A stretch of 62,629 bases of DNA, filler included, from Calcarisporiella thermophila CBS 279.70 (Eukaryota > Fungi > Calcarisporiellomycota): NCBI RefSeq assembly GCF_041956535.1. It is 11 parts of 10 records of this genome, joined end to end, with 100 filler letters (N's around TTAATTAATTAA, not from the genome) between each part and the next. Parts side by side here need not be neighbours in the genome. Positions count along the whole stretch, not along the records: positions 9,178 to 24,059 come from NW_027192220.1; 10 more parts are not named here. One strand, 5' to 3'. Shown piece by piece: positions 8,887 to 46,700 of this stretch. The translations under genes were made by a program, and so were the position numbers. The first letter of the stretch is position 1; the number at the start of each line of letters is the position of its first letter. The notes beneath the pieces are model-generated. The model did not search any database. It saw only the letters and a program-made list of their open reading frames with translations, and was not told the origin of the DNA.

Positions 8887-11212
8887 CACACTTTCATAAC
8901 AGCCGGAATAAAGTGCATGTGCGCCACAACGCCTTGAAGGGTGGTTGACCTTTTTTAAGGAGTCGTTTGTCGTGGGGGAAGGGTTCATATCAAATAATAA
9001 TGGCAGCGACGTCGCGAAAAGAATGCGTTCCTTGAGGCATTTTCGAGGACAATGCGGGATGCGGTTCTTGTAATAATNNNNNNNNNNNNNNNNNNNNNNN
9101 NNNNNNNNNNNNNNNNNNNNNTTAATTAATTAANNNNNNNNNNNNNNNNNNNNNNNNNNNNNNNNNNNNNNNNNNNNGGCATGATTTTATTTTTCTGTGA
9201 TCTAGTTTCAATATACCAACAAATTTGTAACATACTTTTTGGCAAGCAGTTTTTAAAAGCAACTTTTACACGTATCTTCTTAAGTTCCCTTCGTTTAGAT
9301 ATTATGCAGTTAGACTTGATTAAGCTTTTTTTTTTGAATGTCAACGAAAACCTAAGAAGAATTACTATATCAATATATCCCTGACAGGAATTTCCGATGC
9401 GCTGAATAGAAGTAAAGAGAATCCAAAATTGTGCAATTAATGGTCTCTTTTATAAACTAGATATCAATATCCCTATATTGACTTTGCCTATGAATATCGG
9501 AATAGGCTCTTGGAAGATTGCAAGTGCGTCACATAGTCTGATTTACGTATAAAATAATGCATAAACTTAGATAGCTGTAATTCTTTGGTTAATACAATAC
9601 GAATCCACTAATTGAAGAAAATGGTTGATATGTGTAACGAAGTCAGTAAGAAAGAAGTACCTCTCACTCTTAAGGAAACTCATTTTATCTTCTAGAAATT
9701 CGAAATTTAACCAGCAGAATATATCAGGTAAAAATATGATCAGCACTCTTAGATGAGAAGATCTAGACAAATTAAGTTTTATTCACACAGCTTGATGATT
9801 CTAAGATTGTATTGCGCTGAAAAGTTCAACTGATATTAAAGCCATCGTGTTGCAGTATTATATTCTTCAAAGCTATCGTTTGATTATAAAAATTAATCCT
9901 AAGAGGTTACTTAGGAAAATTTATTCAGGTAAATAAAAAGGTTGATCATAATATCCATCAATATCCAATTAATTTGTGATCCAGTGCAGAATAAATAACG
10001 TGCAATTGAACAAGTATTCCACGAGGATATAATAGAAATGATACCAGGAAATATAGAGTATCTGATGAAAGCAAGTAGTGATTATAAAAGATCATGAAAT
10101 ATTTTTTTGCTTTTATACAATATTTTACTTGGTATCATAGCGAAATAAGTTTGTGTCTATACTTTCATCTTTAATGTATGTCTCATAATATTAAGGTTTT
10201 TTTACAAGCCGTGTAGGTAGTCACGTGAAGCATAACAGTTGTGTTTGCTGTTTGTAAAGCAACTCAATATAGTGGTAAATGATGATATGGAAGGAAAAAT
10301 GTGAAAAATGGCAATTTCTTATACAATATTCGGGGCAGATTGATATAGAAATCCTGTTCTCTCACATTCATGTTTCGGTTGCTAAAATCTCAATTAACGT
10401 CCTATAATCGTTCGATTTATTTCTTCATTTATTTACCTTATATAATGTTGTCAAAGATATACGCTCCGCAATGGAACGAAAAGAGTTGACGAAAAAAGAT
10501 TCAGTGAAAACAAGAGAGAGAATCGGCGTGCCAGATATTCTGGCTATGTTACTTTGATGTAATTAATGAAAAAAGACAATTTTTTAGACTGTATGAGCAG
10601 CAACAAAGAAAGCTTGAGAGAACCGCGTGTGGCTACAAGGAGGATACAAGCCACCAAATGAAGGGCAGCACCAGACGAAAAAAGGTAATTGCCAAAGTGG
10701 TTCTGTTGATTAATTATTTAATTTCTATTATTGCATAACAAGGTGTTTCTAATAAATAATTCAATAAATAGCCAAATATTCAAGCACCATTAATTAAAGC
10801 ATTATAAGTATTGGAGCAATCACCCCCTTTCAAATTAGTAATTTATTGACATAGAGAAGTTCGAATCTTCTTCATACCAGATCTAAGCATTTTATTGTTA
10901 CATTGATCCAAGCATTTTCCAAACGTAGATTTCTTATAGGGATGGAGGAATTGCTACCCATATGTTTACAGAATTTTTTAAAATTTCCCACACTTGTTTA
11001 TTTTTGTTTTGTTTAGATTGTAACTAACCTAAAAATCTCCAATTCTATTTACATTTTAATTTTTTATGAATGTTTTTTATCTTTATCTTATCTATATATA
11101 TTATTACGAATGAAGCACGATTTGGGCTCCGAAAAAGCTGTAAACATCCAGTGAATGAAGCTTGGGCTCGAAGCCTAAAGGGTATTGGCCGAAGTTTGTG
11201 AAGACTAATATC

Positions 11213-11337
11213 AGATATCCTTAAAGGGCTATAAATATTCCCAAAAATAAATCTTTCGGAGAATAAAAGGATATCCATGACACTTGGGGTTTATGGGTAG
11301 AAATTCATTTGGTAAAGGCCTCGACCAGTCTAGAAAC
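11213..11337 (+). repeat. ~125-bp degenerate duplicate of the halogenase upstream region (20072-20195)
   Basis: Collinear shared blocks: AGATATCCTTAA, CCAAAA.AAATC..TCGGAG, TATCC.TGACACTTGGG, TTATGGGTAGAA, ATTTGGTAAAG, CAGTCTAGAAA. Confidence 0.8.
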
Positions 11338-11729
11338 AATCCTATATTATGACAAACCAATTTATTGCTGTATAATGTATTATATAAATGGTCTTTCAAT
11401 ATGTTGAGTATATTTAATGGATGCGACTGAGATATGATAAGTAATGCAATATCTGTAATTTGCCCATGTCGAAATAGATTATTATATATTTTTATTCAAT
11501 ACCAAAGGAATATGTATGCGTATGACCAAGTTTTTATATTAAAGTTTTTAGAATTTTCGAAAATTATTCTCAGAGTTCTTATTGTTCAATTCACTAGTCT
11601 AGATATCAATTAGGTAACAACATTATATTTATGTGTTCCAATGGAATGTTGCAGAGATACAGTCTGTGTGCCCTATTACCATATAACTAGCTAGCTTTTA
11701 ATGGCAAATCGAGCATCACAGTGGGAATC

Positions 11730-12031
11730 GGAATAGGTAGTCAGCAGTCCATGCTTTACGATCCCGCTCTTATTATATTTTACTTATTTATGGATTTTTC
11801 TTTTGTTTTCATTCACTCCCTTCTTGTCGGGAGGGCCAAGGGAATGTGTTTGAGAGTTGACACGATTATATATGTCTCAATTAATCTTATTTTGTTTTCT
11901 TCGTTTTCTTTTATATTCCTTATTTTTTCTTTAATTTTCCTTAGGGATCTATCAATATTTTCATTGAAAGTAACTATTTATGACCAATAAAACAGCCCCA
12001 TCATCATCATGTACTGCTGACTGCCTATTCC
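11730..12031. mobile_element. MITE-like element with terminal inverted repeats
   Basis: GGAATAGGTAGTCAGCAGTCCATG (11730-11753) and CATGTACTGCTGACTGCCTATTCC (12008-12031) form a 22/24 inverted match around an AT-rich non-coding interior. Confidence 0.6.
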
Positions 12032-12530
12032 TTTTACACTAAGCCTAGCATATGCGACGGCTTAGTATTAAAGTATACTGAAGTGCCATTTGAATTCGCC
12101 GTATCAATACTGAGAAAATGTTTGACGTTATCCAAAAGTCACACCATAATAATATTAGTAATCCGAAAATGACAAATCATATAGTGTAACTAAAATGATC
12201 AATTGGAGCGTAAGTTGTATCATTTGAGATTACACAGTACAACCCTTTGTTCACGATATTACACATAATCCGCTTTGGATATCGCCCACCTGGTAACTTC
12301 TTGCTAGTATGCCAATCGATACATCTCGATCACCATTCATAAGTTGTTTACATCGACACATCCCCTCCTTCTCCATATCTTTTCTCCAAAGAGTATCTCT
12401 TTGATATAGCTCTCCTTCTTTATCTCATTAGGTAGGAATATCGGATTTTCCTCATAGGGATTGAATTCTTTTCTAAAGCATTATTCAATCATTGATGTAA
12501 CGAAATAATTTTCAAATACTTAGCATTAGA

Positions 12531-14306
12531 ATGACCGTGTCAACATTGGGGCCTGATCATGCAGAAGGTAGTCAACCAATGCAGGAATCAGTCGGCTTAA
12601 CAGCGCAACCTGTTCTTCTCAATGAGATGGCCATTCCGATTGATACGGTAACGGATACATCGTTGCGGTCTAGCTTAGACGATCAGCATGTCGACCCCAA
12701 ACAACCAGACACTATTCATAACAACGACGACTATACCCTTAGCACTCGTGGCTTTCTCCTTGTCCTTGGTAGTTTGTCCATATCATTCTTTTTGGGTGCG
12801 CTCGACAATACTATTGTTTCAACAGCATTAACGAAGATTGCAAACGACTTTCGTGAGTTTGACTCAGTCAGCTGGGTGGCCACCGTCTACTTACTGGCGG
12901 GTAGTTCGCTCCAGCCGATTTACGGTAAATTAGCAGATATTTTTGGCGGAAAAGCCACATATTTGTTCTCCATGATCGTCTTCTTGGTCGGATCAGCAAT
13001 TGCTGGCGCGGCGCAGAGCATGACCATGTTGATTGTGGCTCGTTTGATCCAGGGAATTGGCGCGGCAGGCATGATGGATCTTCCTATGGTCCTATTAGTG
13101 AAGCTGGTTGGAGTTCAGCAATCCAGCAAGTATATGGGTGTGTTTGGCATGATGTTTGCGCTGGCGAGCGCGCTTGGTCCCATCCTTGGTGGCGTTTTTA
13201 CCGACAAGGTATCGTGGCGATGGACCCTCTATATCAACGTTCCTATCGTTGTGCCGGGTATTGTGTTGACTATGATCTTCCTGAGGCTTCCCGAGGTACG
13301 CAGCTCGCTCATGACGAAGCTCCGGCGCATTGACTGGCTTGGCAGTTTGACCTTTGTAAGCGCTGTGATTTGCTTTTTGTTGTCGACTCTGTGGGGAGGT
13401 CATATCCATGCGTGGAATAGTATTGTGATCATTGCACTCTACCTCGTTAGTTTAGTTCTGTTCGGCATTTTCTTCTTCATCGAAGCTAAGGTGGCCGTCG
13501 AACCAATCATGCCTCTCATGCTCTACAAAAGTCTTAACTATGTCCTGAGTTCGCTCATGTCCTTCATATTTGGCATGTTTTTCTTCGGCATAATCTTCTT
13601 CATCCCTATCTTTTTCCAAGCCGCGCGTGGTGAATCGGCCACGCAAGCCGGTTTACAGTTGATCCCTTTCTTGGTTCCGCTCGCGTTCACCGTCACCTTT
13701 TCTGGGATAGTAGTCGCCAAGACCGGATCCTATCGCCCTTTTATCGTACTGGGTTCCGTTTTCAGCACCATCGGAAGTGGCTTATTAATCCTCCTGGATC
13801 AGCATAGCTCTCCTGGTATGTCCGCTGGCTTTCTTGTCATTTGCGGTATTGGTGCTGGTTTCTCTTTCCAAACTTCCCTCATCGCTGCCCAAGCTACGTT
13901 GGAAACGCAGGATATCGCATCGGGAACGACGCTGATCGCTTTCTTCCGTACAATTGGCGGTGTCACTGGTGTTGCCATCTTCAGCTCCATCCAGCTCAAC
14001 ATGATACAAGCCTCCCTTTCCGGCTTACCTAATGGCGCTCTTCTTCTTGATGCTGCAAATAAGGGCTTAGAATTTATTATAACCTTGTCGCAAACCGACC
14101 AAGAAATCATAAATATTGCATATACCGATGCCATCAATAAGGTTTTCATTGCCATGACGCCATTGACTGGGCTCTTGATCATAATAGCCTTGGGCATGAA
14201 ACATATCCCATTGACGCCTCCTGCCTCCTCCATGTCCACTCCAACTCCATCGAATACCGAAGATCGCATGGTCAAAGAGAAGGAATCAGACAATACGCGC
14301 GTATAA
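12531..14306 (+). CDS. MFS drug:H+ antiporter (DHA2/DHA14, EmrB/QacA-like), 591 aa, intronless
   Basis: Motifs FLGALDNTIVSTAL, GKLADIFGGK, LIVARLIQGIG, GPILGGVFTDKVSWRWTLYINVP, IDWLG. About 14 hydrophobic helices. Confidence 0.95.
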   Translation: MTVSTLGPDHAEGSQPMQESVGLTAQPVLLNEMAIPIDTVTDTSLRSSLDDQHVDPKQPDTIHNNDDYTLSTRGFLLVLGSLSISFFLGALDNTIVSTALTKIANDFREFDSVSWVATVYLLAGSSLQPIYGKLADIFGGKATYLFSMIVFLVGSAIAGAAQSMTMLIVARLIQGIGAAGMMDLPMVLLVKLVGVQQSSKYMGVFGMMFALASALGPILGGVFTDKVSWRWTLYINVPIVVPGIVLTMIFLRLPEVRSSLMTKLRRIDWLGSLTFVSAVICFLLSTLWGGHIHAWNSIVIIALYLVSLVLFGIFFFIEAKVAVEPIMPLMLYKSLNYVLSSLMSFIFGMFFFGIIFFIPIFFQAARGESATQAGLQLIPFLVPLAFTVTFSGIVVAKTGSYRPFIVLGSVFSTIGSGLLILLDQHSSPGMSAGFLVICGIGAGFSFQTSLIAAQATLETQDIASGTTLIAFFRTIGGVTGVAIFSSIQLNMIQASLSGLPNGALLLDAANKGLEFIITLSQTDQEIINIAYTDAINKVFIAMTPLTGLLIIIALGMKHIPLTPPASSMSTPTPSNTEDRMVKEKESDNTRV

Positions 14307-14815
14307 TACCAAGTTCCACGTTTATATCATGAACCATGATATTTCAATGGAAAGGCATTCGCTTCATGCTACTATACTCCAATCCGCTATTCTCCTGACA
14401 TTCTGTATACACATTTTCTTTAATTTTAATGCATGCAATCGGTGGGCTTTGTTTTATATAATTATCTTCTGAGAAAACGAGTTGCTCGACAATTATCTCC
14501 TTCAAATGTAGACGCCGCTTCGTAAAAATAAGCAAACGAGGTTTTATTTAAAAGTAATATATAAATTACTTATAAATAAAACCAGTAATTTATTCGGGGA
14601 AAACCAGTATACAAAAATATAATCGAAACTGTAGTTGTAATTCTAGTCATTGTCTAGTCGTTATTCCTCGCTCTAAATAAACAATAATATCCATTAAATA
14701 GAAAAATATAACCATAAGTATTACGTAACATTATGTATATTTCGGTTGAAGTGGATAATTAGTTATTATAATTCTATATTGTATTTATTTCGTATTTTTA
14801 CGATTTTCAAAAAGT

Positions 14816-14849
14816 ATCGAGTAATAAGTCACGTGACTTATTACTCGAT
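14816..14849. repeat. 34-bp perfect palindrome centred on GTCACGTGAC
   Basis: ATCGAGTAATAAGTCAC|GTGACTTATTACTCGAT, located just 3' of the UGT stop between the convergent MFS and UGT genes. Confidence 0.9.
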
Positions 14850-14875
14850 TCATGTTGGAATCATTTTAAGTGCAC

Positions 14876-16444
14876 TTATAATGATGCCACAATATCATTA
14901 CAAAAGTCTTGTAAGGCACGGTAAGAAGAGCCATCAGGGATATTCCATGCAGAGCGCATAATCAAGCTATACCGCTTCGCATTTTCGACGAATTTAGGGA
15001 AGTTCTCAGGGGCAAACAACTCATTAATTCTTTCAGTAATTTCGTTGTGGAGGACGAGGCGCCCACTTTCCATGCTGGGTACGGGGCCCACCGTGGGAGC
15101 GGAGGTGTTTGGGAAATTGATACCGACTCCAAGGCGCTTCAATAAGTCGGCCGAATCGGACTGGTCGCAAAATCCAGGCCACCCAATTGTGGGACGAGCA
15201 TACATGAGCGATTCCATCGTCGAGTTCCAACCACAATGCGTCAAAAATGCTGCTGTAGCACGATGTGCAAGGATAGCACGCTGAGGAGCCCATGGCACTA
15301 TTACAATCTCACCAAATTTTTCTCCCACCTTGATATTGCTTCGAACGAGGAGAATCCCTTCCGGAAGGCCGGGGATATTTTGAACATATGGTAGAATGGG
15401 CCCCATGTTTCCACGCAATACCCAGAGAATGGGCCGGCCGGTTGCGCTCAATCCACGTAACTGCTCAATCTTTTGTTCAGCGGTAGTCACGGTTACCGAA
15501 CCAAAAGCAACAAATAACACGGAGGTGTCATCTTGACGATCCATCCACTGCTGGACGTATGCGTCGATTGCATGCTGCTTTTGGAGTCTTTTGTCAAGTT
15601 GAGCTAGTGTCGGCGTAGAAGTAGCAATGGAAGGCACAGTGCTATCCACAGAATCTATCCAATTGAGTGGACCTAAGAAATGCACTGGTACTCCCGGATA
15701 ATTGGCCTGCCATAGCTTGCTGGTTCGCAAAATATTACCTTCGATGCCGTCAACCGTATTCCACAGGAATCCACGAAATTCGGGAAGTAATGTCGCCACA
15801 CGCTGACGTTGGCCAAATATTATTCCAAAATCGTCGGATGAAATAGAATCCATACGGACATCTTGGTCATACGACACTCCCGCTTTCATGTCAAGAGGAG
15901 GTAAAGGGTACATAGTGTCAGGGCTAGTCGAAAATCCCGTTGTAAGTATAATATAAAAGGGCAATTCAGCGTTGGGGGTCTTAGGGCAGCTGCGAACAAT
16001 GAATGTGTCTAAGAGCACGGTCGTAATTGGGTAACCTTTGTCAGGATTTTGTTGCTGCTCGCGAAGATAGCGCTCGATCGCTATGCCAGTCTGATGCGCA
16101 GATTCGATATAGCATTGGAAACCATTGGGGGGGTATTTGTCGTCCTCCTGAGGATTGACCTGAGGGAGATCGTATAACTTAGCGATGCGTACCTCTCCAT
16201 AGGAACCACGAAATATCACGCCACTTTCATCGGGTGAAGAAATGAGTCCCGTCGCGACAAGCTCATCGACATATGAGTTGGCGGTGGCTATCGTTACTAT
16301 GCATCGCAGCCCAGGGGTGACATCTGAACCTACGAGTGCATTTGGCATATCAATTAGGCGACGCGCAAGACATATGATTGGTACAGCATGACCATGACCA
16401 GTCGAGAAAGAAATGAAGAGATGCGGAAGGCGCGATACGACCAT
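14876..16444 (-). CDS. UDP-glycosyltransferase (GT1 family), 522 aa from the first ATG, intronless
   Basis: N-terminal catalytic His (GHGHAVP), SVLFVAFGS, and a complete PSPG box WAPQRAILAHRATAAFLTHCGWNSTMESLMYARPTIGWPGFCDQ. Confidence 0.93.
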   Translation of the reverse strand: MVVSRLPHLFISFSTGHGHAVPIICLARRLIDMPNALVGSDVTPGLRCIVTIATANSYVDELVATGLISSPDESGVIFRGSYGEVRIAKLYDLPQVNPQEDDKYPPNGFQCYIESAHQTGIAIERYLREQQQNPDKGYPITTVLLDTFIVRSCPKTPNAELPFYIILTTGFSTSPDTMYPLPPLDMKAGVSYDQDVRMDSISSDDFGIIFGQRQRVATLLPEFRGFLWNTVDGIEGNILRTSKLWQANYPGVPVHFLGPLNWIDSVDSTVPSIATSTPTLAQLDKRLQKQHAIDAYVQQWMDRQDDTSVLFVAFGSVTVTTAEQKIEQLRGLSATGRPILWVLRGNMGPILPYVQNIPGLPEGILLVRSNIKVGEKFGEIVIVPWAPQRAILAHRATAAFLTHCGWNSTMESLMYARPTIGWPGFCDQSDSADLLKRLGVGINFPNTSAPTVGPVPSMESGRLVLHNEITERINELFAPENFPKFVENAKRYSLIMRSAWNIPDGSSYRALQDFCNDIVASL

Positions 16445-17195
16445 CTTGAACACTGTAGACTATAACTTAACGAAGAGGAGAAGGGCTCTGAATTTATAAA
16501 GAGAAAACTAAATCTCGATGAGAAAATAAGATTATATGTATCAATATTATGATATGAGGCGAAAACAAATCTCCCTTGGATAGGGTTGTGGTGTAGAACA
16601 GAATCCCTCGGCTACCTCATCTATATCTACTAAGGAATTTTCGCTAACCCCTACGGGGCGCGAGTTCAATATTTGAGGAACTTTCCAACAAAAACCGACC
16701 AATGCTGTACTTGACTTTAAACCTATTTTGGATTTTTTCATTTCCAAAGTAGGTTTTCCGTACAACTTAACATCGTGTAACAACAATTTGATACGTGATA
16801 ATAAACCATCAAATTACAAATCTTGGGCCAAAAGGGTGTGGTCACGTGATATTCATCTATGCCGATATACCAGCTTGCTTACATCTAATTTTTACCGCAT
16901 TTTTAAATTTTCTTGAAGTGTAACAAATGATTTTGCAGAGATACCTAAGCAATTTCCTTAAAAAGACCCTGCTTTAGGGATACTCTCTAATGACTAACCA
17001 AAGTATATTTTATCCTATATTTTGCCATATTGCAATCATATAGAATTGAGATGGCTTGGTTTACAAATAGTCACACATACTACGACTATCTCATGAAGTA
17101 TCAACGTTAGAATAAGATATACTGCTACACTTTGTTTATATAATAATAATAATAATTTATAACAAGAATATAGATAGATATTATGCCTGCAGCTT

Positions 17196-19323
17196 TTACC
17201 AAGCAGCATCTACATGAACACGCCATAGCTCGCGATAGCCGTTCTGATATGCCGTACGTGTATGGTGCAATGCCATGTTGTCGTTGATGAGGATATCGCC
17301 CTCTTGCCACTGGTGGCGATAGCATATACGCCTGTCGTATAACAAGGTAGTCAGCTTCTCACAAATGTCATCACTCTCCTCTTTGCTAACGCCTAGAATG
17401 GTGACATATGTAGGTTGGCATGCAGCTGTTTTGGATTCGGGCCATGGCTCATGGAAGCGTAATGTTGGTACACCAGTCACAGGATGGGGCGATATCAATG
17501 GTAGTTTGATGGATTTCCCTCCAAATGCATCGTTAGCTGGCGTATAGCTGGTCCATTCGAGTTTGCTGAGCTTCTCGAGGGACAAATCAGCTGGAAGCAG
17601 TTCAAGTAGCAGTTTGGATGATGAGAAAAGGGTTATTCCGCCCACGGCAGTGTTGGCTTTGTTGCGGAACATCTGGAAACTATAGTGTTCAGTAAGTAGT
17701 AGAAGTTAGACAAATCTTGTTAGGAGATTTTACAAAAAAGACTGTTACTTACAGTGGTGGCCTTGGAATGACTTCTCCTCTGTCATTTTCGGCCATCTTG
17801 AAGCATCCATCATAATGGAAAGGCATATCTTCTCGAGTCAAGACATTGTTCATGTTGATATCAGCATTCTCTCGAACTTCGAGGATGTCGCCAAAAGGCC
17901 ACATCTGGATCTCACCCAACTCGGAAGCTTTCATGCGGAAGATATCCTTGTCTATGGGCATCGCGAAGCCACGAAGAACGACTGGAGAGTTGGAGAGAGC
18001 GAGTTGTCGAACCTTTTGCATGTTGACGTCTACGAAATTGTATTCCTGACCTTTGCGCGCAGGTTTGACCAGGATTCCGCACGGATATAAGAGCTCAAAA
18101 GTGAGATCCATACCTTCCCATTCGTATACACTGTCGATCTCTCGTAATAGCCAAGGCTTGCCCTCTTTGAGTACGACTTCGCATTTCGCCTTGCCGTCCG
18201 GAATATCCTCGCTATGAAGCACAGCAAGGTTCGCGTTACGGTCTTGATATGGCGCATTATGCCAAGGAGTTACAGGTTTTTTGATAAAATCACATCCGGG
18301 GAACAAAGATATAGCGAGTTTGTCCGTGTTGTCAGCGGCATGAATCGAAAGACGGACGCTTGAAGCGAATTTCTCAGCAATAAGGTTTGCAAAACACTAT
18401 CCCAAAATTTGCCCAAACTTTTTAGTTACGATCGTGACATAAAAGCTAAAAGTGTCTACCAGCCTGGCCTATGCTTACCTTGCCGCGCTTGATCATCTCC
18501 TTAGCAATGATGCTTTGCGCCTTCTTCTGTGCAGTCTTGCCCTCCTCGCCGTGCATAATATCCCCCAGGTCAAGAGCAAGGAAGCGAAGGTAGCCACGGT
18601 AAGTGGCCAACGCATTGGGATCTTCTGCGATATTTTTCTCAAAATCATAGTTTTCGGGAAGGTATTCGCTGAGGAGACGAGCCTTGGTACGGCCAATTTG
18701 CTCGACATATTGTTCTTCTGTCTGTGGAACCGGCTCATTCATCAGTTGGCTAACGCGAACAAACTCGATGTGTTTTAGGTCGAGATTCTCTGCCATTTTA
18801 CGGATGTCCATGCCATATCGCCAAGTGTCTTCGTCAGACACGCCCAAAAGATCTATTCATATAGAAAGGATTAGAGCATACAGGTTAATATGGGGTCATT
18901 TCATTTTATATATCATTATAATTTTATTTTTGCCTTACCATTGTATACTAAACCGTCACTGACAATAATAACCCTCGCACCAGCAAAGTAGACTTCCTCA
19001 ATTGATTGGCAGAGACCGTTCAAATGGATAAGAGAAAACTCATCAGCTTTGTCGGGATAAACGCCTATCACCTTGCGTATGCTGTTGGGACTTTTAAACG
19101 GATATGCTGGAAGGACCATATCGACCCGTTGGCCGTTCAACACCATCATTCGAATCTTGGCATGAATCTTAGGACGACCAATTTTCTCAAACTTGTCCAC
19201 AGGACTAGAGATACGATATCGAGCAAGAATGTCGCATATCTTGTGGGCTACGTAGTCGACTTTTTGACACTTGGTAGATTCGTGGCTCGGTTGGATGACG
19301 GCAGTAGAGGATAGGTTAACCAT
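17196..19323 (-). CDS. Isocyanide synthase (DIT1/PvcA/IsnA family) fused to a TauD-type Fe(II)/2OG dioxygenase (PvcB/IsnB-like); 4 exons, ~628 aa
   Basis: Exons 19323-18939, 18852-18479, 18396-17753 and 17679-17196 have GT-AG boundaries and sum to 1887 nt in frame. ICS motifs LPAYPFKSPN, PDKADEFSL, IVSDGLVYNDLLGVSD, YRGYLRFL, VRLSIH, TPWHN. Dioxygenase facial triad from PFHYDG (HxD) and DNMALHHTR. Confidence 0.93.
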
Positions 19324-20407
19324 TATGTTGATATCGGGGGTTAGCGGAGGGGTGGGGTGTATGAAAGAGTTTGAAATCAGGGATAATGAGAATAGAAAGC
19401 TTAAAGAGATAATGAGCAACGGCAGAGCGATGCTTCCTTTTATACAATCGAAACAATGACAGGTCCGATGCTGCTAAGTATCCAGACACATAAAGTATTG
19501 ATATCTCTTGTGAATTATAGCAAGGACCCATGAGAGCATGCATCCCCAGGTTACTTGCATTCATTCTCGTTCAATTCGTAGGAGCTTTAATTGATGTGTC
19601 CAATGGGTATTCTCTGGGTTTGAACAGACGACCTTCGCAGCAGAGTCGTCAAACGAATAAATCGTGCGGAATTAAATGTAGAGATACAGATGTAACGTAG
19701 GCAGCGTTGTTCTCTGGGGTTGCTAGGGGTTAAACTCGTCCTTAGTAGAACTGGGTGAGAGGGGAGAGTGGAGATTTGTAATAGTATTGTAGTTTATCTT
19801 CATAATTCTTCGACCTTATTTATTTATTTGTTTATCTATTTAATCTGGTAGAGTAAAATGGTGGCGCAGCCAAATGTGACCATGATGGTTGCATGACAAT
19901 TTTTAATTTTTAATTTAATTTTTAGGTTTTCCTTTACTTAGTTATCGGAAAGTAACAGCTGATATTTTATAATAGGCTTATTAATTTCAGGTTCCATAGA
20001 GAAAGCTTTCAAACAGGGACACGGGCGTTTTATTTCCAATTCTATGAATTCTTTGGTCATTGATTTATAATAGATATCCTTAAGCGGTTAATAGAATTTC
20101 CAAAACAAATCCGTCGGAGGACAAAATGCTTATCCTTGACACTTGGGTTATGGGTAGAATTTTATTTGGTAAAGAGCACAAGCAGTCTAGAAAAAACCAG
20201 GCGGTAATATTACTTACTATCTCATTGAAAAAACAACTGCGCATCCCCATGAAAATATCATATAAATCCAGCTTAGGATGTTTTCCCCTGGAGCTATTGT
20301 GTATCCAAAAATCTTTACATCAGTTCATTCCCCTTTGTTAAAATTCATCTTTCATACTCTATACCATCATACAAACCTAATTATAACTTAAACCCACGCC
20401 GATTTCA

Positions 20408-22384
20408 ATGATTGCAGTTGATCCCCACCATAAGTTTACCGAAATTGCCCAGGAACAAGGACTTTCAACCTCAGAGATCCTTAATTTCAATAATAACAGC
20501 CCCTCGCTTCCTGAAAACCAGGATGTAGTCGTTGCTGGTGGTGGTATTCACGGCCTCATCTACGCTATTCATGCTAAATGCTTTGATCCTAGTATTAGCG
20601 TCACTGTCGTGGAGAAATCGTCCAAGCCGGGCTATAAAATTGGGGAAAGCACGCTTCCCCTTTTTTCCCTTTGGTGCAAGATGATGGGGCTCAACGCGGA
20701 AGTGCTCCTGCGCATTTTTGGTCTCAAGGATGGCCTCTGCTTCTATTTTTTGGATGCGGAAGATCCAGAGCGCTATACCGATTTCTGTAGCAATGGAACT
20801 CCTTGCCTATTTTTATCCGGTTACCAGATTGAGCGTTCCATCAGCGAGCTGCTGTTCACTGTTTATGCCCAACGACATGGTGTCAATGTATTCCATGGGC
20901 ATTCAATTGATATTCAGGGAACAAAGCTTTCTGGTACTGGAAACTTTGTCCAAGTCGTAGAAAACAAGTCCAAAGTCTCCAAGACTATCGCTTCGAAGTA
21001 CTTAGTAGACGCCACGGGCAGATTTCGACAATTTGCTTCCAAAGAGGCTCGCATCAAACGATTTGACGGTTGGAATGTCAACGCATATTGGGGCTACTTT
21101 ACTTGCAAAGATGAGACCAAGATTCCACTTAGATTTTTCGAGGGCGACCACACCAATCACCTCTGCTTTCCCGAGGGATGGGCATGGGTAATTCGCATGC
21201 CTTCCTGGGAAGGTAGCCCTATTCCTAACTTGATGGATATGATAAACTACTTGCTTGACCATGCTGAGAATAAGACGCCTGGTGATGAAATTCCATCGTC
21301 TGAGGAGCTTGCAAAAATGTTTGATCTCAAGCTCCAGTGGATCTTTAGTATTGGGTTTGCGGTTCGCGATGATGCTAGGTATCCCGATGATCTGACGCCA
21401 TATGGAACAAAGGAAGCTGAGCAGAAGTTTAACTATTGGGTTCATCGTTATCCTATGATCTCGCGGGTGATGGAGAACTACAAATTGATTGAAAATCCAT
21501 ATGGACCTAACACCACCTGGTTCGTTCGCAAGCAACTCGCTTTTCAATCTCCTAAGGTTTCAGGACCTGGATGGTTCGCCATAGGTGATGCAGTGGGATT
21601 CACTAATCCCCTTCACTCTCCTGGAATCAACGCTAGCATGTCGACCTCCACATATGCAGCTGAGTTGACTCACAAGGCCTTGGCTACGTCGGATCCAGAG
21701 AAGCGCTTAGAATTGTTCAAGCCATATGAAGACTTTTGTGACAAGCTTATCCCCTCGCTGCACCAGATGAACAAGTTTAACTACGTCTGTTTCCGGCATC
21801 CCGAGCTTGGACCCCAAGTTTCCACCCTTTGGCAGTTCTTAGCTGGCATAGGCATCCCTGGATGGCAACTCATCCGACAAGATTACAACCTCACATTTGC
21901 TACCTATGTCGACCACTCCAAAAATTGGGCATGGGGTTCCCAAGTGCCAGAGTACGTAACGGTGGCGAAAAAAGCTATTGAGTTACTTGATGGTCCATTA
22001 TACGATCCCGTTCCGATTGAGACTGTTAATGAATTGATCGAATTTTCGAATGCTGTTAAACGTGAGGCCGTGGCTTCAAACCGCTTCAACTTCAGATGGA
22101 ATGGCCTTCTTCGATATTATGATCTTGAGCTTAACTATTTACCGGAAAAGACTTGGAAGGATCGATTCTCTAGGATGTGTGAACATTGTGGAAGTTGGGT
22201 CGCTTCACGACCGGATTGGAGAAAATGTTACACGTGTGGAAAGATGAGAAAGATCGAAAACTGTCAGGTGGAGTGGAATCCTAAATTGGAAGTCCATGAA
22301 GTTGCTGCACTGGTCCGAGCCAGTGATGCCAAAGCCACTTCTGCTGCTTCTGGGCCACATTACGATGCAGTTGGCGTTATTTAA
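20408..22384 (+). CDS. Flavin-dependent halogenase of the MalA (malbrancheamide halogenase) type with C-terminal Zn site, 658 aa, intronless
   Basis: FAD motif AGGGIHG, KIGEST, FGLKDGLCFYFLD (catalytic Lys context), DATGR, WAWVI (WxWxI halogenase motif), GDAVGFTNPLHSPG, and CEHC...CYTC Zn ligands. Collinear over the full length with MalA as I recall it; this needs alignment. Confidence 0.92.
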   Translation: MIAVDPHHKFTEIAQEQGLSTSEILNFNNNSPSLPENQDVVVAGGGIHGLIYAIHAKCFDPSISVTVVEKSSKPGYKIGESTLPLFSLWCKMMGLNAEVLLRIFGLKDGLCFYFLDAEDPERYTDFCSNGTPCLFLSGYQIERSISELLFTVYAQRHGVNVFHGHSIDIQGTKLSGTGNFVQVVENKSKVSKTIASKYLVDATGRFRQFASKEARIKRFDGWNVNAYWGYFTCKDETKIPLRFFEGDHTNHLCFPEGWAWVIRMPSWEGSPIPNLMDMINYLLDHAENKTPGDEIPSSEELAKMFDLKLQWIFSIGFAVRDDARYPDDLTPYGTKEAEQKFNYWVHRYPMISRVMENYKLIENPYGPNTTWFVRKQLAFQSPKVSGPGWFAIGDAVGFTNPLHSPGINASMSTSTYAAELTHKALATSDPEKRLELFKPYEDFCDKLIPSLHQMNKFNYVCFRHPELGPQVSTLWQFLAGIGIPGWQLIRQDYNLTFATYVDHSKNWAWGSQVPEYVTVAKKAIELLDGPLYDPVPIETVNELIEFSNAVKREAVASNRFNFRWNGLLRYYDLELNYLPEKTWKDRFSRMCEHCGSWVASRPDWRKCYTCGKMRKIENCQVEWNPKLEVHEVAALVRASDAKATSAASGPHYDAVGVI

Positions 22385-22599
22385 GTGAAGCGAACTGTCT
22401 ATTCCTTTTCAAGTTGGCTTTTTGTAACAAATTGTTTCTTAAATGTATTTTGGTGTATGCATTTCAATATGGACTCTAGGATTTTGGTAATAAAACTTAT
22501 ATGCGAAACGCAGACGGAAATGTGTCCCATCTATTATTCCTATTACATTTGGAAAGCCACTCATCTCAAAGAACTCGTTTTTTAACTTCTCTTTTCTTC

Positions 22600-23064
22600 T
22601 AGCATTTGGCCAGGTAATATATTCGGGGCGTAGTGATTCAATCGCGAGGGCAATCCGTTTGTGACGTCAATTACTGCAATCGAGTATTTTGAGGCCAAAT
22701 CATTGCCATTGGAAAGTCGGTGGAGAAAAATTAACAGCTGTACCCATATCAGCAATTGCTGCGTAGGGCAAGTTGATTGAAGGGAAGTATTTCTCTCTAA
22801 TGTCATTACCAGAACAGATAATGCCTACTGACACATGCGAGCTTTTCTTCGAAATCGCCCATCATCTAAGCGAAAAAGAATATCATCGCGAAAATGTGGG
22901 GATTTAGGAACCAAAGACCTTGGGGATAAAAATCGAGAGTCGTAAATGTAAAGGCCAAAATCCCAACTAGTACGGTCATCTACACTGTCCTCAAGTTGAA
23001 GCAAGTGCAGCACGATAAGAATTTCCAAAATCTCCCTTTCCGAGATCGATGGCATGACAATCAA
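22600..23064 (-). pseudogene. PIF/Harbinger-like transposase N-terminal remnant
   Basis: Reading through one stop gives LDDGRFRRKARMCQ*ALSVLVMTLE...QLLIFLHRLSNG, resembling the FR..FRM / QL.I.L.RL pattern of HARBI1-like proteins. Confidence 0.5.
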
Positions 23065-23149
23065 TTAGAACATGTCGATTCGTTTTGAAAATTCTGCGAT
23101 CAATAAGCAAAACGCAAATACGCCTAAAATCTAGCTCGAATGCTCGTCT

Positions 23150-23430
23150 ACAAAAGAGAAGAATTAGCAATGCATGATTGGCTAGGATAATATAATAAGC
23201 ACTTAGAGTTAGTGCTATTCCAACAAGATAATGGTCTCAAAAATACAGCCAATATCACCAATGCCTGACTAAAAAATAACTAGATACAGATACTGGAGTG
23301 ACCCTCACAGCCACTAGATCTCATTATAATAGAACACATGTGGAGTAAATTAAAGCAAAAGCTTGGTATATATCAAAAGGTGCCAAATAAGATATGCTGC
23401 GGCAACGAATTGAGACGGAATGAGTTTAGA
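23150..23430 (+). mobile_element. Tc1/mariner DDE transposase remnant
   Basis: Degenerate LFQQDN and LE*PSQPLDLIIIEHMWSKLK motifs. Confidence 0.75.
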
Positions 23431-24167
23431 TTTGCTTTTTAAATATTGAATAATCAATGGAAAGTGACCCTATTGAATATCGTGATGAATTGTTGCCTTG
23501 GATTATATGCACCGAGTCATCAGATGTGCACTTAAATTAATACAATATAGTTCACTTGGAAAATTGAAAATATAAAAAAAAAAGTAATTTTAACTAGTTA
23601 AACAGACTATTTGCTTAACGCAGTAAATATCAACACTATAGTGGATGCACCATAGCAGCTTATATGCACGAAAATGCGTATCAGATGGCTCGTGAGAATT
23701 CTGCATATGCAATGGATGGAATTCCATACTCAATATACTGAATTACATCTCCCATTAATGAAGTACATATCTCCGAGATTAGTATATCAAGATAAATCAT
23801 ACATATCCTGTTTGCAAAATCTAGATATTCGTACATGTTATTTCTCTCCTTGTATACCCATTAGACTATACAAAATTCTTGCCGAGCTTTTGCTCACTAC
23901 GGCTGATTATGCATGCCCCCAAAATCTTTGTATTATGTAGAAATGCAGAATGAAGTCGGATGATTTTTCTGAACTACCATATCATTGTGTGGGAGTGAAG
24001 AGATTATATCTATTAATACATAATTTCTGCATATGAGGATCAGAAATATCATTAGAGGTNNNNNNNNNNNNNNNNNNNNNNNNNNNNNNNNNNNNNNNNN
24101 NNNTTAATTAATTAANNNNNNNNNNNNNNNNNNNNNNNNNNNNNNNNNNNNNNNNNNNNCTGTTACA

Positions 24168-43700: not shown

Positions 43701-46700
43701 AGGTTTAATAGCGCAGTGAAAGATTCGTCGGCAATGAGTGATTCCACCATCCCCAGCTGAGAGAGTCGATTGAGTATAATCGAAAGGAGAAAGTGGTGGT
43801 GATCCGAGGAAAGGCTCGTAGGCTTAAGAATCCGCGTAAGAAGCATGTTCATATCTTCTGCTTCAAAGAAAATATCGAGCTGAGCAAAAAGCTTCAAAAG
43901 CTAACCGGTCAGGCAACATATACATTTATGAGTAATAGGGTCAAAATGAAAAATCGAAGTCAATGCTTCACCTTCTCGAAATGACTTTCATGAAGATCGT
44001 CGTGCGAATCAAGAAGCGCAAGCAAATTTCTAATGAGCTTTTGTTTAAAAGGGTGCCAAAGAGTGGGGCTGTGTAGCTCAGCACTAAGATGTCGCTTCAT
44101 CAAGTTTGCGAATCCTTATGTTCAAAGGGTTAGCTTCGGTAAAAAAAAAAAAAAACGCTATTCTAATAGCCCCGCCAATTTACCTTGGTTAAATTGGTCC
44201 ACAATCATCTTGTCGTTTTCGCCTATCCAGATCTCCACCATCGCTGGATGTTCAAATATTACCGATCTCAATTCTTTCCCAATCCCTTCCGCCCCCTCCT
44301 GGTCTACCCTTTGAAGTATCACATTTAATAATTCCATGTAAAACTCCCCGCTTTCCGCAGAAGCATTAGCGAGCAAGGACATGATCTGGCGACATATGCT
44401 GACCAATTGAGAAGTGGGGGCTTGTTTAGGCGAATTGGCTGCCGTTTCAATTACAGCTCGATATTTGGGAATATGCTTAGGGAGGAGGTTGGCTAGGAGA
44501 AGCGTTAAGGGGAAATGGTGTAATACTCTGGCACTTTGGCTACAAGATAATATAAATTTCATTGAATGAAAAGGAAATGCGTATTGTTACTTTAATGCCT
44601 ACCCATCTTCAAGTTGATGGAGAGAGCTATAATCCAAGAAACTTCCGCACGCAGGATGTCTATCAGAAATGTAATTGACAAGCAATAGGATCAGTTGGTG
44701 CTTCAAGGTGAGTTTGGACAGTTCAGCAAAATGATTGCTCATCGCAGTGACAGAGAGAGTGTTGATAATATTGTCCAATTCCTTTCGAGCAACTTCATCG
44801 AGACCTGTCTCGCCATCTATCGCACAGGAAAATTAGGTATGACATCGAAAAAAAGATAAGAAAAAAATGCATTTTACCCTTCAATAGTCGCACGATTTGT
44901 TTCTCATGTGCTTTGTTGGACTTTGCATTCTTTGTCTCGGGAAAGATGTCGACCTCTCTGTTGGAATGGCGCTTCAACCACATTTTCAACGCAAAAAAAA
45001 TATCAGCAGCATCCCACGCGCCCTTCTCCGCAATTAGATTGGACTGGATTTTGGCCACTTCAAGACGATCCAAACACAAATCCAGGCATTCGAGATTACC
45101 CACGTGCAAAAAGGCAACTCCTCGCATCACTCGTGCGATGAATCGTGCAGCAGTAGGCGTCCCTGTAAATCGAAATTGCTCCAACAGGGTCATCAATAGC
45201 GGGCTAAAGGGAGACATAGCGCCGTCGTAACCAGAAGCTTGAGTAATTTTGGTTACTTCATCGATGTACCGATAAGGGGTTTTTAGACACCTCTGCATGC
45301 AGTCATCAAGGAATCGGATCGAGTCCGAGGTCTCGACTCCAGCAGAACAGGCAGCAATCCAGAAGGGGATTTCGCTTGCATTGTGCTGGAAGAGGATCGA
45401 GTCAGAGAGGACCTTGACAACGACCAGGTTGGCCAAATTGTGGATATATTTGTGTGGTTGGGGATAGGCGTGAAGAAGGTGGAGTATGTGGGCCAGGTAC
45501 GAATACGAGGATGCGGAAGGCTTAGCAGACCAGCGGAATTCGGCCTCAGCAAGCAGCTCAAGTAGATGGGACAGCACAATTGGAGGTAGGGTCGCTAGGT
45601 CGGACGGGATTAGCCGGCTTACATCAAACTTGGCCTCTGAGAGCGTATCTGGAATGAATCGCTGGTAATATTTCAGGACACCCAGTAGTGTTTCGTGCAA
45701 AAGCTCGTGTGCCTGCTGTTTCTCTTTTTCATCTTCCTCTAGTTGTGTATCGGCAGTCTCACTCTCTTCCGTTTTTTGCTTCTTCTTTTTCTTTTCTGCC
45801 CCAGAGTGTCCCGTAAGTTGAGCATGCAAGCCAATCAAAGTTTGAACGTCGGGGAGCCTACGTCTCAGTTCTGCGCATAAATCTTTAACGGATTCTAGCC
45901 ACCCTCCTTTTCTCTTCGCATTGCCCTCTTTTTCCCCGAGTAGTTCCGCCACTCTACGCCATTGCTCGACCACAGCTCCAAACTTTCGTAGGGCACACAT
46001 CATTAAACCGCAGGTCACAAATTTCACCATTAAACTCTGGTGCAACAGTCCCTTGCTCAGAAGGGTCCGGTGAATGCAAGTGGGCAGTAGAGCTTCCATC
46101 ACTGTATGGATAGGAGGTGATCTGCTAGGATAGGTCGCGTTTGATGGGTAGAAGAGTGTAGGGAGAGGAAGAGCAATAATCTTATTCATTGTTGCTACGT
46201 TGGCAAGCCACTTGGACGAAAGTCGAGGGTCATAGCTCAGCGTCATTCCTTGCCAGTAGACAGCCACAAGCTCAGGGCATGCCTCAAGTATTTTGATCAG
46301 CAATTCTTGCTGTCTAAGATCCTCCGTTGGTTTTAACTGTAAAATGAATTTGGACAAGATCTTGTTATAGACTCTAATCGTGCGCTGATTCTTGTTTCCA
46401 TGAGAACCGGTTGATACTGGAGCTTTATCTTCAGATATCTGCGGTGGGTACCAGCCTGCATCCTGGAAGCAAACGCCCACTCCCGGTGTCGCGCAGATGG
46501 AGATGAGGAAGTGATGAACAAGATTGGCAGGGATTGAATTAGCATCGTTCGGAATCTCAGGGTCGCATCGCTCATAGATTTTTAGCAACTATGAATTGAG
46601 ACAAGGGTAAAACTGACATGTAAATAGAGCGGGAAAATAGTTCATTTTACCTGCTCCAATATATAGTTGTTAAAAAAGGCCACCTTTGCAGTTCGACTTA

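Follow-up and report, generated by a model that had tools for sequence, protein, structure and literature searches.

Organization of the locus

In this study, we analyzed a window of 62,629 nucleotides from the fungus Calcarisporiella thermophila and focused on positions 9178-24059, a piece that lies within C30:65993-80986 of the genome (names such as C30 denote contigs; coordinates without such a name are those of the window). A preliminary description of this DNA had claimed four intact genes packed into 12531-22384, with an isocyanide synthase (ICS) gene divergent from a halogenase gene. Reading frames and profile matches confirmed the four genes, which encode a major facilitator superfamily (MFS) transporter, a UDP-glycosyltransferase (UGT), a fusion of ICS and a TauD-like Fe/2-oxoglutarate (2OG) dioxygenase (ICS-TauD) and a MalA-family halogenase. 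The latter two are indeed divergently transcribed, with 1.08 kb between them. The features are as follows:

12531..14306, plus strand: DHA2-type MFS efflux transporter, 591 aa, intronless (PF07690 E 4e-44, TRI12 E 5e-12, EmrB/DHA2 E 1e-61)
14876..16444, minus strand (ATG 16444, stop 14876): family-1 UGT, 522 aa, intronless (PF00201 E 1e-15)
17196..17679, minus strand: ICS-TauD exon 4, C-terminal half of the Fe/2OG dioxygenase and stop codon (PF02668 E 3e-26)
17753..18396, minus strand: ICS-TauD exon 3, end of the ICS domain (RLSIH, TPWH), linker and start of TauD with His447-x-Asp449 and Lys453 (domain profiles, alignment)
18479..18852, minus strand: ICS-TauD exon 2, middle of the ICS domain (PF05141 profile 73-201, E 2e-25; splice sites)
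18939..19323, minus strand: ICS-TauD exon 1, ATG and N-terminal ICS domain with PAYPFKSP and SDG motifs (PF05141 E 1e-27)
19324..20407, no strand: divergent intergenic region between the ICS-TauD and halogenase genes (sequence)
20408..22384, plus strand: MalA-family flavin-dependent halogenase, 658 aa, intronless (phmmer to MalA' E 5e-245)

Judged from sequence, the four-gene cluster is confirmed as real, intact and co-conserved, and the grouping is not due to chance. The divergent intergenic region may act as a shared promoter; k-mer counts across the cluster promoters revealed no convincing shared motif.

Bifunctional ICS-TauD

The ICS-TauD gene consists of four exons that encode 628 aa after splicing with no internal stop, and its three introns (86, 82 and 73 nt) are all GT-AG. 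PF05141 spans exons 1-3 and PF02668 exons 3-4, fused in one frame. When exon 1 was compared with the PvcA-type NCBIfam model, the match (E 1e-20) was far under the cut-off since it covers a single exon only. The splice model is independently supported by the public model of the paralogue on C2 (P0396, 627 aa), which agrees with it and aligns with 573/628 identities and one gap. Database searches were performed exon by exon, with the annotated paralogue P0241 standing in for the full-length search, and the joined model was used in the frame check, local BLAST and phylogenetic trees. The best non-self match of exon 3 was the ICS-TauD of the basidiomycete Parajaminaea.

The ICS domain retains 31/34 conserved ICS columns. 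In the TauD domain, the Fe triad and the 2OG-binding Arg are complete (H447, D449, H607 and R621), and K453 and H544 occupy the positions of K107 and N188 in PIsnB (7TCL); the exon 4 residues, namely His544 at the N188 site, the Fe ligand His607 and Arg621, were assigned by alignment to PvcB (3EAT) and PIsnB. It has been reported that K/R at the K107 position together with N/H at the N188 position mark enzymes forming vinyl isocyanides, whereas PvcB-type enzymes have L and C (PMC9467999). From these diagnostic residues, the TauD domain is predicted to form a vinyl isocyanide. The earlier suggestion of vinyl isocyanide rather than isocyanoacrylate chemistry is consistent with this PIsnB-type K/H pair.

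MalA-family halogenase

All features of the MalA family were found in the halogenase: GxGxxG, the catalytic Lys107 (equivalent to MalA K108), WxWxI at 258-262, a four-Cys site near the C-terminus (Cys591, 594, 607 and 610) and the fold itself, the predicted model (pLDDT 90) matching MalA in Foldseek with an rmsd of 1.5 A. The WxWxI motif and the Lys mark a halogenase and not a monooxygenase. On the other hand, the enzyme does not look like a premalbrancheamide halogenase. Its substrate lid carries a 7-residue insertion, Gly occupies the site of the MalA Glu/Asp494 contact, and no mal-type nonribosomal peptide synthetase (NRPS) gene is present; neither an NRPS nor a prenyltransferase gene was found in the cluster. 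The lid is nearly identical in the ICS-linked halogenases of Calcarisporiella, Aspergillus, Penicillium and lichens and unlike that of MalA, suggesting that these enzymes act on a common substrate that is not premalbrancheamide. In view of these differences, the analogy with MalA drawn in the preliminary description is weak and does not argue for an indole substrate.

MFS transporter and UGT

The remaining two genes belong to native multigene families. The MFS transporter is 77% identical to its copy on C47, its next paralogue being 58% identical (on C5), and only ~26% identical to the MFS proteins of Dikarya clusters. The UGT matched plant UGT structures (E ~1e-24) and has the hallmarks of family-1 UDP-glucosyltransferases: an N-terminal GHGH motif that would contain the catalytic His, Asp146 and a PSPG-like box (385-428) ending in DQ, which we take to indicate a preference for UDP-glucose. 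It is 76% identical to its copy on C47 (VTP21DRAFT_9059), and a length-limited search revealed nothing else above ~35%. The family has ~8 members in the genome, all intronless and plant-like and without close relatives elsewhere; other members were located in a tandem array (C35:139217-150321), on C22 (52639-54075 and 141295-142755) and on C8 (1224752-1226179).

Cluster copies within the genome

The cluster is present in three copies, on C30, C47 and C2, and all of the halogenases (3/3 PF04820 genes) and ICS genes (4/4) found in the genome reside in them. The additional copies are:

C47:31494-46220: second full cluster copy, with two ICS-TauD genes
C2:1551252-1570740: third copy, rearranged, at a contig end, with intact halogenase and ICS, a truncated UGT and retroelement DNA in between

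In C47, the halogenase, ICS-TauD, UGT and MFS genes have the same order and orientation as in C30 (paralogues VTP21DRAFT_9058, _9059 and _9061), and a second ICS-TauD gene is added. Of the two, the proximal ICS-TauD is the one whose ICS domain has diverged more, and its gene has no intron 2. In the distal one (44092-46220), NFDG replaces HYDG and the C-terminus is truncated; with the first His of the Fe site and the Arg at the C-terminal end missing, its TauD domain is probably dead. The C2 halogenase and ICS show 87-95% identity, and the C30 halogenase shares 87% identity with the C47 copy and 94% with the C2 copy (dN/dS 0.09 and 0.12). Between C30 and C47, dN/dS was 0.09 for the halogenase, 0.15 for the UGT, 0.17 for the MFS and 0.14-0.21 for ICS exon 3, at dS of ~0.8-1.2. 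All four genes are under purifying selection (dN/dS 0.09-0.21). That the genes form one co-conserved pathway, as had been proposed, is well in line with these three copies and with the co-location of every halogenase and ICS gene.

Neither a C6 regulator nor a DJ-1/PfpI hydratase was found in the C30, C47 and C2 loci, and the C30 cluster contains no GST (glutathione S-transferase) or GFA gene and no flavin reductase gene. One PF01613 gene, a candidate flavin reductase outside the cluster, is located on C7, and DJ-1 genes are present elsewhere in the genome. Two further genes were observed close to the copies. Located 1.4 kb downstream of the halogenase on C47 is an arylamine N-acetyltransferase-like gene (PF00797, C47:29489-30124), which may provide this copy with an additional tailoring or detoxification function. 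The C2 halogenase has a BBE-like FAD oxidase 5 kb past it.

Flanking regions

The surroundings had been described as AT-rich DNA with remnants of transposable elements (TEs), and so they proved to be. The GC content is 28-39% in the flanks vs 45-49% in the genes, both flanks largely consist of dispersed repeats with copies elsewhere in the genome, and reverse transcriptase (RT)/RNaseH remnants lie ~9 kb left of the MFS gene on the same contig.

9178..12450, no strand: left flank, AT-rich, gene-free, dispersed repeats (67 genome matches, self included)
22502..24048, no strand: right flank, TE remnants in the form of degenerate dispersed repeats (69-82% identity to ~11 further copies)

The left flank includes an element resembling a miniature inverted-repeat TE (11730-12031) with 24-nt terminal inverted repeats and many genome copies, also beside the C47 cluster, and Ty3-like RT remnants were seen near the piece on C30. 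In addition, a 52-nt repeat (83% identity) occurs upstream of both the MFS gene (11288-11339) and the halogenase gene (20145-20196). It is probably a repeat remnant, although it may be a shared regulatory site.

Linkage of ICS and halogenase genes across fungi

The nearest halogenases (60-67% identity) were found in Aspergillus/Penicillium and lichen fungi. Usnochroma and Antarctic lichen contigs carry, in this order, genes for a monodomain ICS, GST or GFA, the halogenase, a C6 factor, an MFS and DJ-1; a 550-aa open reading frame beside a lichen halogenase, considered as a possible UGT, was rejected as it is a fungal transcription factor. The Parajaminaea cluster (Parajaminaea phylloscopi OZ330318.1, ICS4G-type) comprises a halogenase, intradiol dioxygenase, phenol hydroxylase, MFS, DJ-1, C6 factor, monodomain ICS and ICS-TauD, and its phenol hydroxylase and intradiol dioxygenase could degrade or ring-open the product. 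At an intron-rich fungal locus, L062, an ICS-TauD gene is divergent from a halogenase gene just as in C. thermophila. Moreover, the consecutive locus tags L7F22_037255 and _037256 encode an ICS and a halogenase on a fungal-type contig. Although listed under the fern Adiantum nelumboides, they group with metagenome proteins of fungal type and probably stem from a contaminating fungal contig. The link between ICS and halogenase is common, not universal. A tie to the isonitriles of Trichoderma was unsupported, the Trichoderma halogenase having no ICS neighbor. In the chytrid Phlyctochytrium bullatum, the halogenase (P0074, L040:5970-8709) has an N-terminal IsnB/TauD-like segment (profile E 2e-8), and no ICS was found on its 14.7-kb contig. 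ICS-TauD relatives were also seen in the aphelid Amoeboaphelidium, the amoeba Planoprotostelium and the oomycete Achlya.

Among the isocyanide clusters of Aspergillus fumigatus, ICS4G contains icsA (AFUA_4G01370) and icsB (AFUA_4G01420), is unexpressed and has no reported product, and no halogenase is mentioned in it (Lim et al., 2018; PMC5974471). Our literature search found no later paper on icsA/icsB. In the top halogenase sequence cluster, many A. fumigatus isolates were grouped with A. fischeri (NFIA_043690) and P. oxalicum (EPS26259.1). Since PDE_01201 corresponds to EPS26265.1 (PMC5048463), the accession offset makes EPS26259 ~PDE_01195, which adjoins the P. oxalicum ICS genes PDE_01188 and PDE_01193, adjacency being by numbering only; in Table S1 of Lim et al. 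(2018), the domain ranges of these two genes are identical to those of AFUA_4G01370 and AFUA_4G01420. With an orthologue in A. fumigatus isolates and this adjacency by offset, it is most likely that a MalA-like halogenase belongs to the ICS4G (icsA/icsB) family. ICS4G is probably the two-ICS gene cluster family 1 (GCF 1) of Nickles et al. (2023; PMC10153163).

Evolution of the cluster

In the trees, A. fumigatus IcsA and IcsB were represented by orthologue-type proteins. In maximum likelihood (ML) trees, the halogenase-linked ICS domains, including that of the C30 cluster and with the exception of L062, formed one clade (99/96). Within it, the C30 ICS domain grouped with the monodomain ICSs of the Dikarya pair, while its TauD domain grouped with the IcsA-type fused proteins (100/99); the homology of both domains with those of the ICS4G family is seen in these two clades. 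The ICS domains of the IcsA-type fused proteins are long-branched and keep 20-29 of the 34 conserved columns vs 31-33 in the C. thermophila and monodomain enzymes. The simplest reading is that the C30 ICS-TauD represents a bifunctional state without duplication, and that in Dikarya the two jobs were divided between the members of the gene pair. The two ICS genes of C47 would show a parallel split.

The halogenase was placed outside both the ascomycete and the basidiomycete clades, and MalA nests among ascomycete homologs, several of which are ICS-linked. A recent bacterial transfer was rejected, the bacterial halogenase relatives being 28-35% identical and having no ICS within 10 kb; the position of intron 1, shared to the codon with other fungal ICS-TauD genes, also argues against a recent bacterial origin. 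A recent halogenase transfer from Aspergillus/Penicillium (Eurotiales) was likewise rejected (approximately unbiased test, p 9e-5), and a species-tree-like placement outside Dikarya is compatible with the data (p 0.35). Both vertical descent and an ancient transfer of the halogenase gene stay as explanations.

Fungal ICS genes have been reported from Ascomycota and four basidiomycetes (Lim et al., 2018; PMC5974471), and the main text of the preprint by Nickles et al. (2023) mentions neither ICS genes of Mucoromycota nor halogenases. Calcarisporiella has been handled as Mucoromycota (PMC11393059) and is assigned to Calcarisporiellomycota in the NCBI taxonomy. The earlier claim of a non-ascomycete host for an ICS cluster stands; the genus lies outside Dikarya.

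Proposed pathway and alternatives

We consider a Tyr-derived chloro-hydroxystyryl isocyanide O-glucoside to be the likeliest product of this self-contained cluster of the ICS4G family, with a probability of roughly 0.45. According to family chemistry, the ICS domain would use ribulose-5-phosphate to turn the amino group of an aromatic amino acid (L-Tyr being the likeliest) into an isocyanide, and the fused Fe/2OG domain would carry out oxidative decarboxylation to an aryl vinyl isocyanide, 4-hydroxystyryl-NC. The halogenase, supplied with FADH2 by an unlinked reductase, would chlorinate the ring once or twice, acting on either free Tyr or the vinyl isocyanide. The UGT might then cap the phenol with glucose, masking a reactive, metal-binding aglycone and replacing the DJ-1/PfpI isocyanide hydratase of the Dikarya relatives, and the DHA2 MFS may export or sequester the glucoside. 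Tyr is favored because a phenol suits an O-glucosyltransferase and because the related Parajaminaea cluster has phenol-degrading genes. A bolder picture, possible but more doubtful than probable, is that the locus is a compact, ancestral-type version of an ancient pan-fungal halogenated-isocyanide pathway, in which the four genes would give a chloro-aryl vinyl isocyanide glucoside, the core product would be that of ICS4G, and MalA would have been recruited from an isocyanide pathway into malbrancheamide biosynthesis.

Several points weigh against the Tyr-derived glucoside. The sole characterized member of the halogenase family acts on indole, and many MalA-family halogenases have no ICS nearby. 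No sequence test used here separates Tyr from Trp in ICS enzymes, and a literature search for ICS substrate determinants found no paper. XanB-like enzymes have the same K/H residues, yet xanthocillin requires further steps, and the final product may be dimerized or hydrated to a formamide. ICS4G was silent under all conditions tested (Lim et al., 2018; PMC5974471). The C2 UGT is broken after ~120 codons by rearrangement and retroelement DNA, and a UGT was found in none of the non-Calcarisporiella clusters seen. The UGT, proposed in the preliminary description as a pathway part, is conserved in the C47 copy and is not co-conserved outside Calcarisporiella. The UGT appears to be lineage-specific, occupying the place of the DJ-1 hydratase and the C6 regulator, and because it is not co-conserved beyond the genus, glycosylation would be a local add-on.

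If the substrate were Trp, an IsnA/IsnB-like core would lead to a chloro-indolyl vinyl isocyanide, N-glucosylated or free. This is an unlikely but serious contender: MalA chlorinates indole, the C30 halogenase keeps five MalA residue equivalents (S82, S129, H253, S409 and F489) and its overall fold (TM 0.94), and IsnB and AmbI3 use Trp; however, the premalbrancheamide-binding Glu/Asp494 site and the lid are replaced, an indole offers the UGT only its N-H, and phenol-processing genes occur in the related Parajaminaea cluster. The sugar, on the other hand, could be incidental. The pathway would then end in a halogenated vinyl isocyanide, or an N-formyl or dimer derivative, with the UGT and MFS as hitch-hiked detoxification genes and the glycoside as a side or storage form, or not made at all. 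Such an outcome agrees with the origin of the UGT and MFS in native multigene families, with their being missing or non-orthologous in other clusters and with the C2 copy, where ICS and halogenase are intact, the UGT is broken and no MFS is in view; it is rather improbable when set against the retention of UGT and MFS through duplication at dS ~0.8-0.9 with dN/dS of 0.15-0.17 and the absence of the usual DJ-1 protection gene from the cluster. It is very improbable that the halogenase lies outside the isocyanide pathway, as one of two activities in a repeat-rich, duplication-prone block, or that the flavoprotein is a hydroxylase. MalA-family genes do occur in many non-ICS contexts and the region is TE-rich and duplicated, but ICS-halogenase linkage extends over three phyla with a congruent ICS sub-clade, and WxWxI and Lys107 are intact.

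The cluster is of interest in several respects. ICS4G is the only A. fumigatus isocyanide cluster without a known product in the literature searched, and a halogenase in this family would provide a Cl/Br isotope handle for finding it. In the Calcarisporiella version two core genes would suffice, so its chemistry is directly testable in a laboratory host. The locus also adds to the hosts of ICS clusters a lineage outside Dikarya, which is reported neither in the text of Lim et al. (2018) nor in the main text of the Nickles et al. (2023) preprint, and provides an example in which a bifunctional enzyme was divided over a pair of genes, apparently on two occasions. Furthermore, it suggests a native substrate type for the many MalA-like halogenases that are still orphans, a group of interest for biocatalysis. 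If the bolder picture is true, the pathway would lead to halogenated isocyanides, a product class not known to have been tied to fungal genes so far.

Comparison with known systems

The closest relatives of the cluster are those of the ICS4G type. Its ICS shares 46-47% identity over the full length with the IcsA-type proteins from A. clavatus and P. oxalicum (PDE_01188), and an MFS gene is present in both clusters. In contrast to the ICS-TauD and monodomain pair of ICS4G, the C30 cluster has one bifunctional ICS-TauD; two ICS genes are found in C47, one with its TauD presumably dead. It contains a UGT and lacks the C6 regulator and DJ-1/PfpI, both of which are present in the lichen and Parajaminaea loci, as well as GST/GFA; its MFS comes from another family, and its host lies outside Dikarya. 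The ICS, halogenase and MFS core appears to be an old, uncharacterized family shared with ICS4G-type clusters, not a one-off. The claim that no characterized fungal cluster has this combination holds, none having been found in the literature searched, but the core is not without uncharacterized relatives of the ICS4G type.

Compared with MalA/MalA', the halogenase is similar in sequence (~55% identity), fold (TM 0.94), the Lys108 equivalent, WxWxI and the four C-terminal Cys residues, and differs in the 7-residue lid insertion, the lack of Glu/Asp494 and the lack of NRPS and prenyltransferase genes nearby. Rhabduscin and byelyankacin are glycosylated aryl vinyl isocyanides. Their bacterial pathways similarly combine an ICS, a PIsnB-type decarboxylating dioxygenase and sugar transfer, whereas they have no halogenase; here one spliced gene encodes the ICS and the dioxygenase as a fusion, and a GT1 of the plant/fungal type takes the place of the bacterial glycosyltransferase. 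The xan cluster shares the ICS-TauD architecture, and its XanB-named homolog has the same TauD diagnostic residues. Nevertheless, its ICS and TauD domains belong to other clades, the C30 cluster lacks the P450 for dimerization, and, to our knowledge, the xan cluster has neither a halogenase nor a UGT. The halogenase link, the presence outside Dikarya, the bifunctional backbone and the UGT are new, being unreported in the literature searched, while the individual parts belong to known enzyme families and the core to a published, uncharacterized cluster family.

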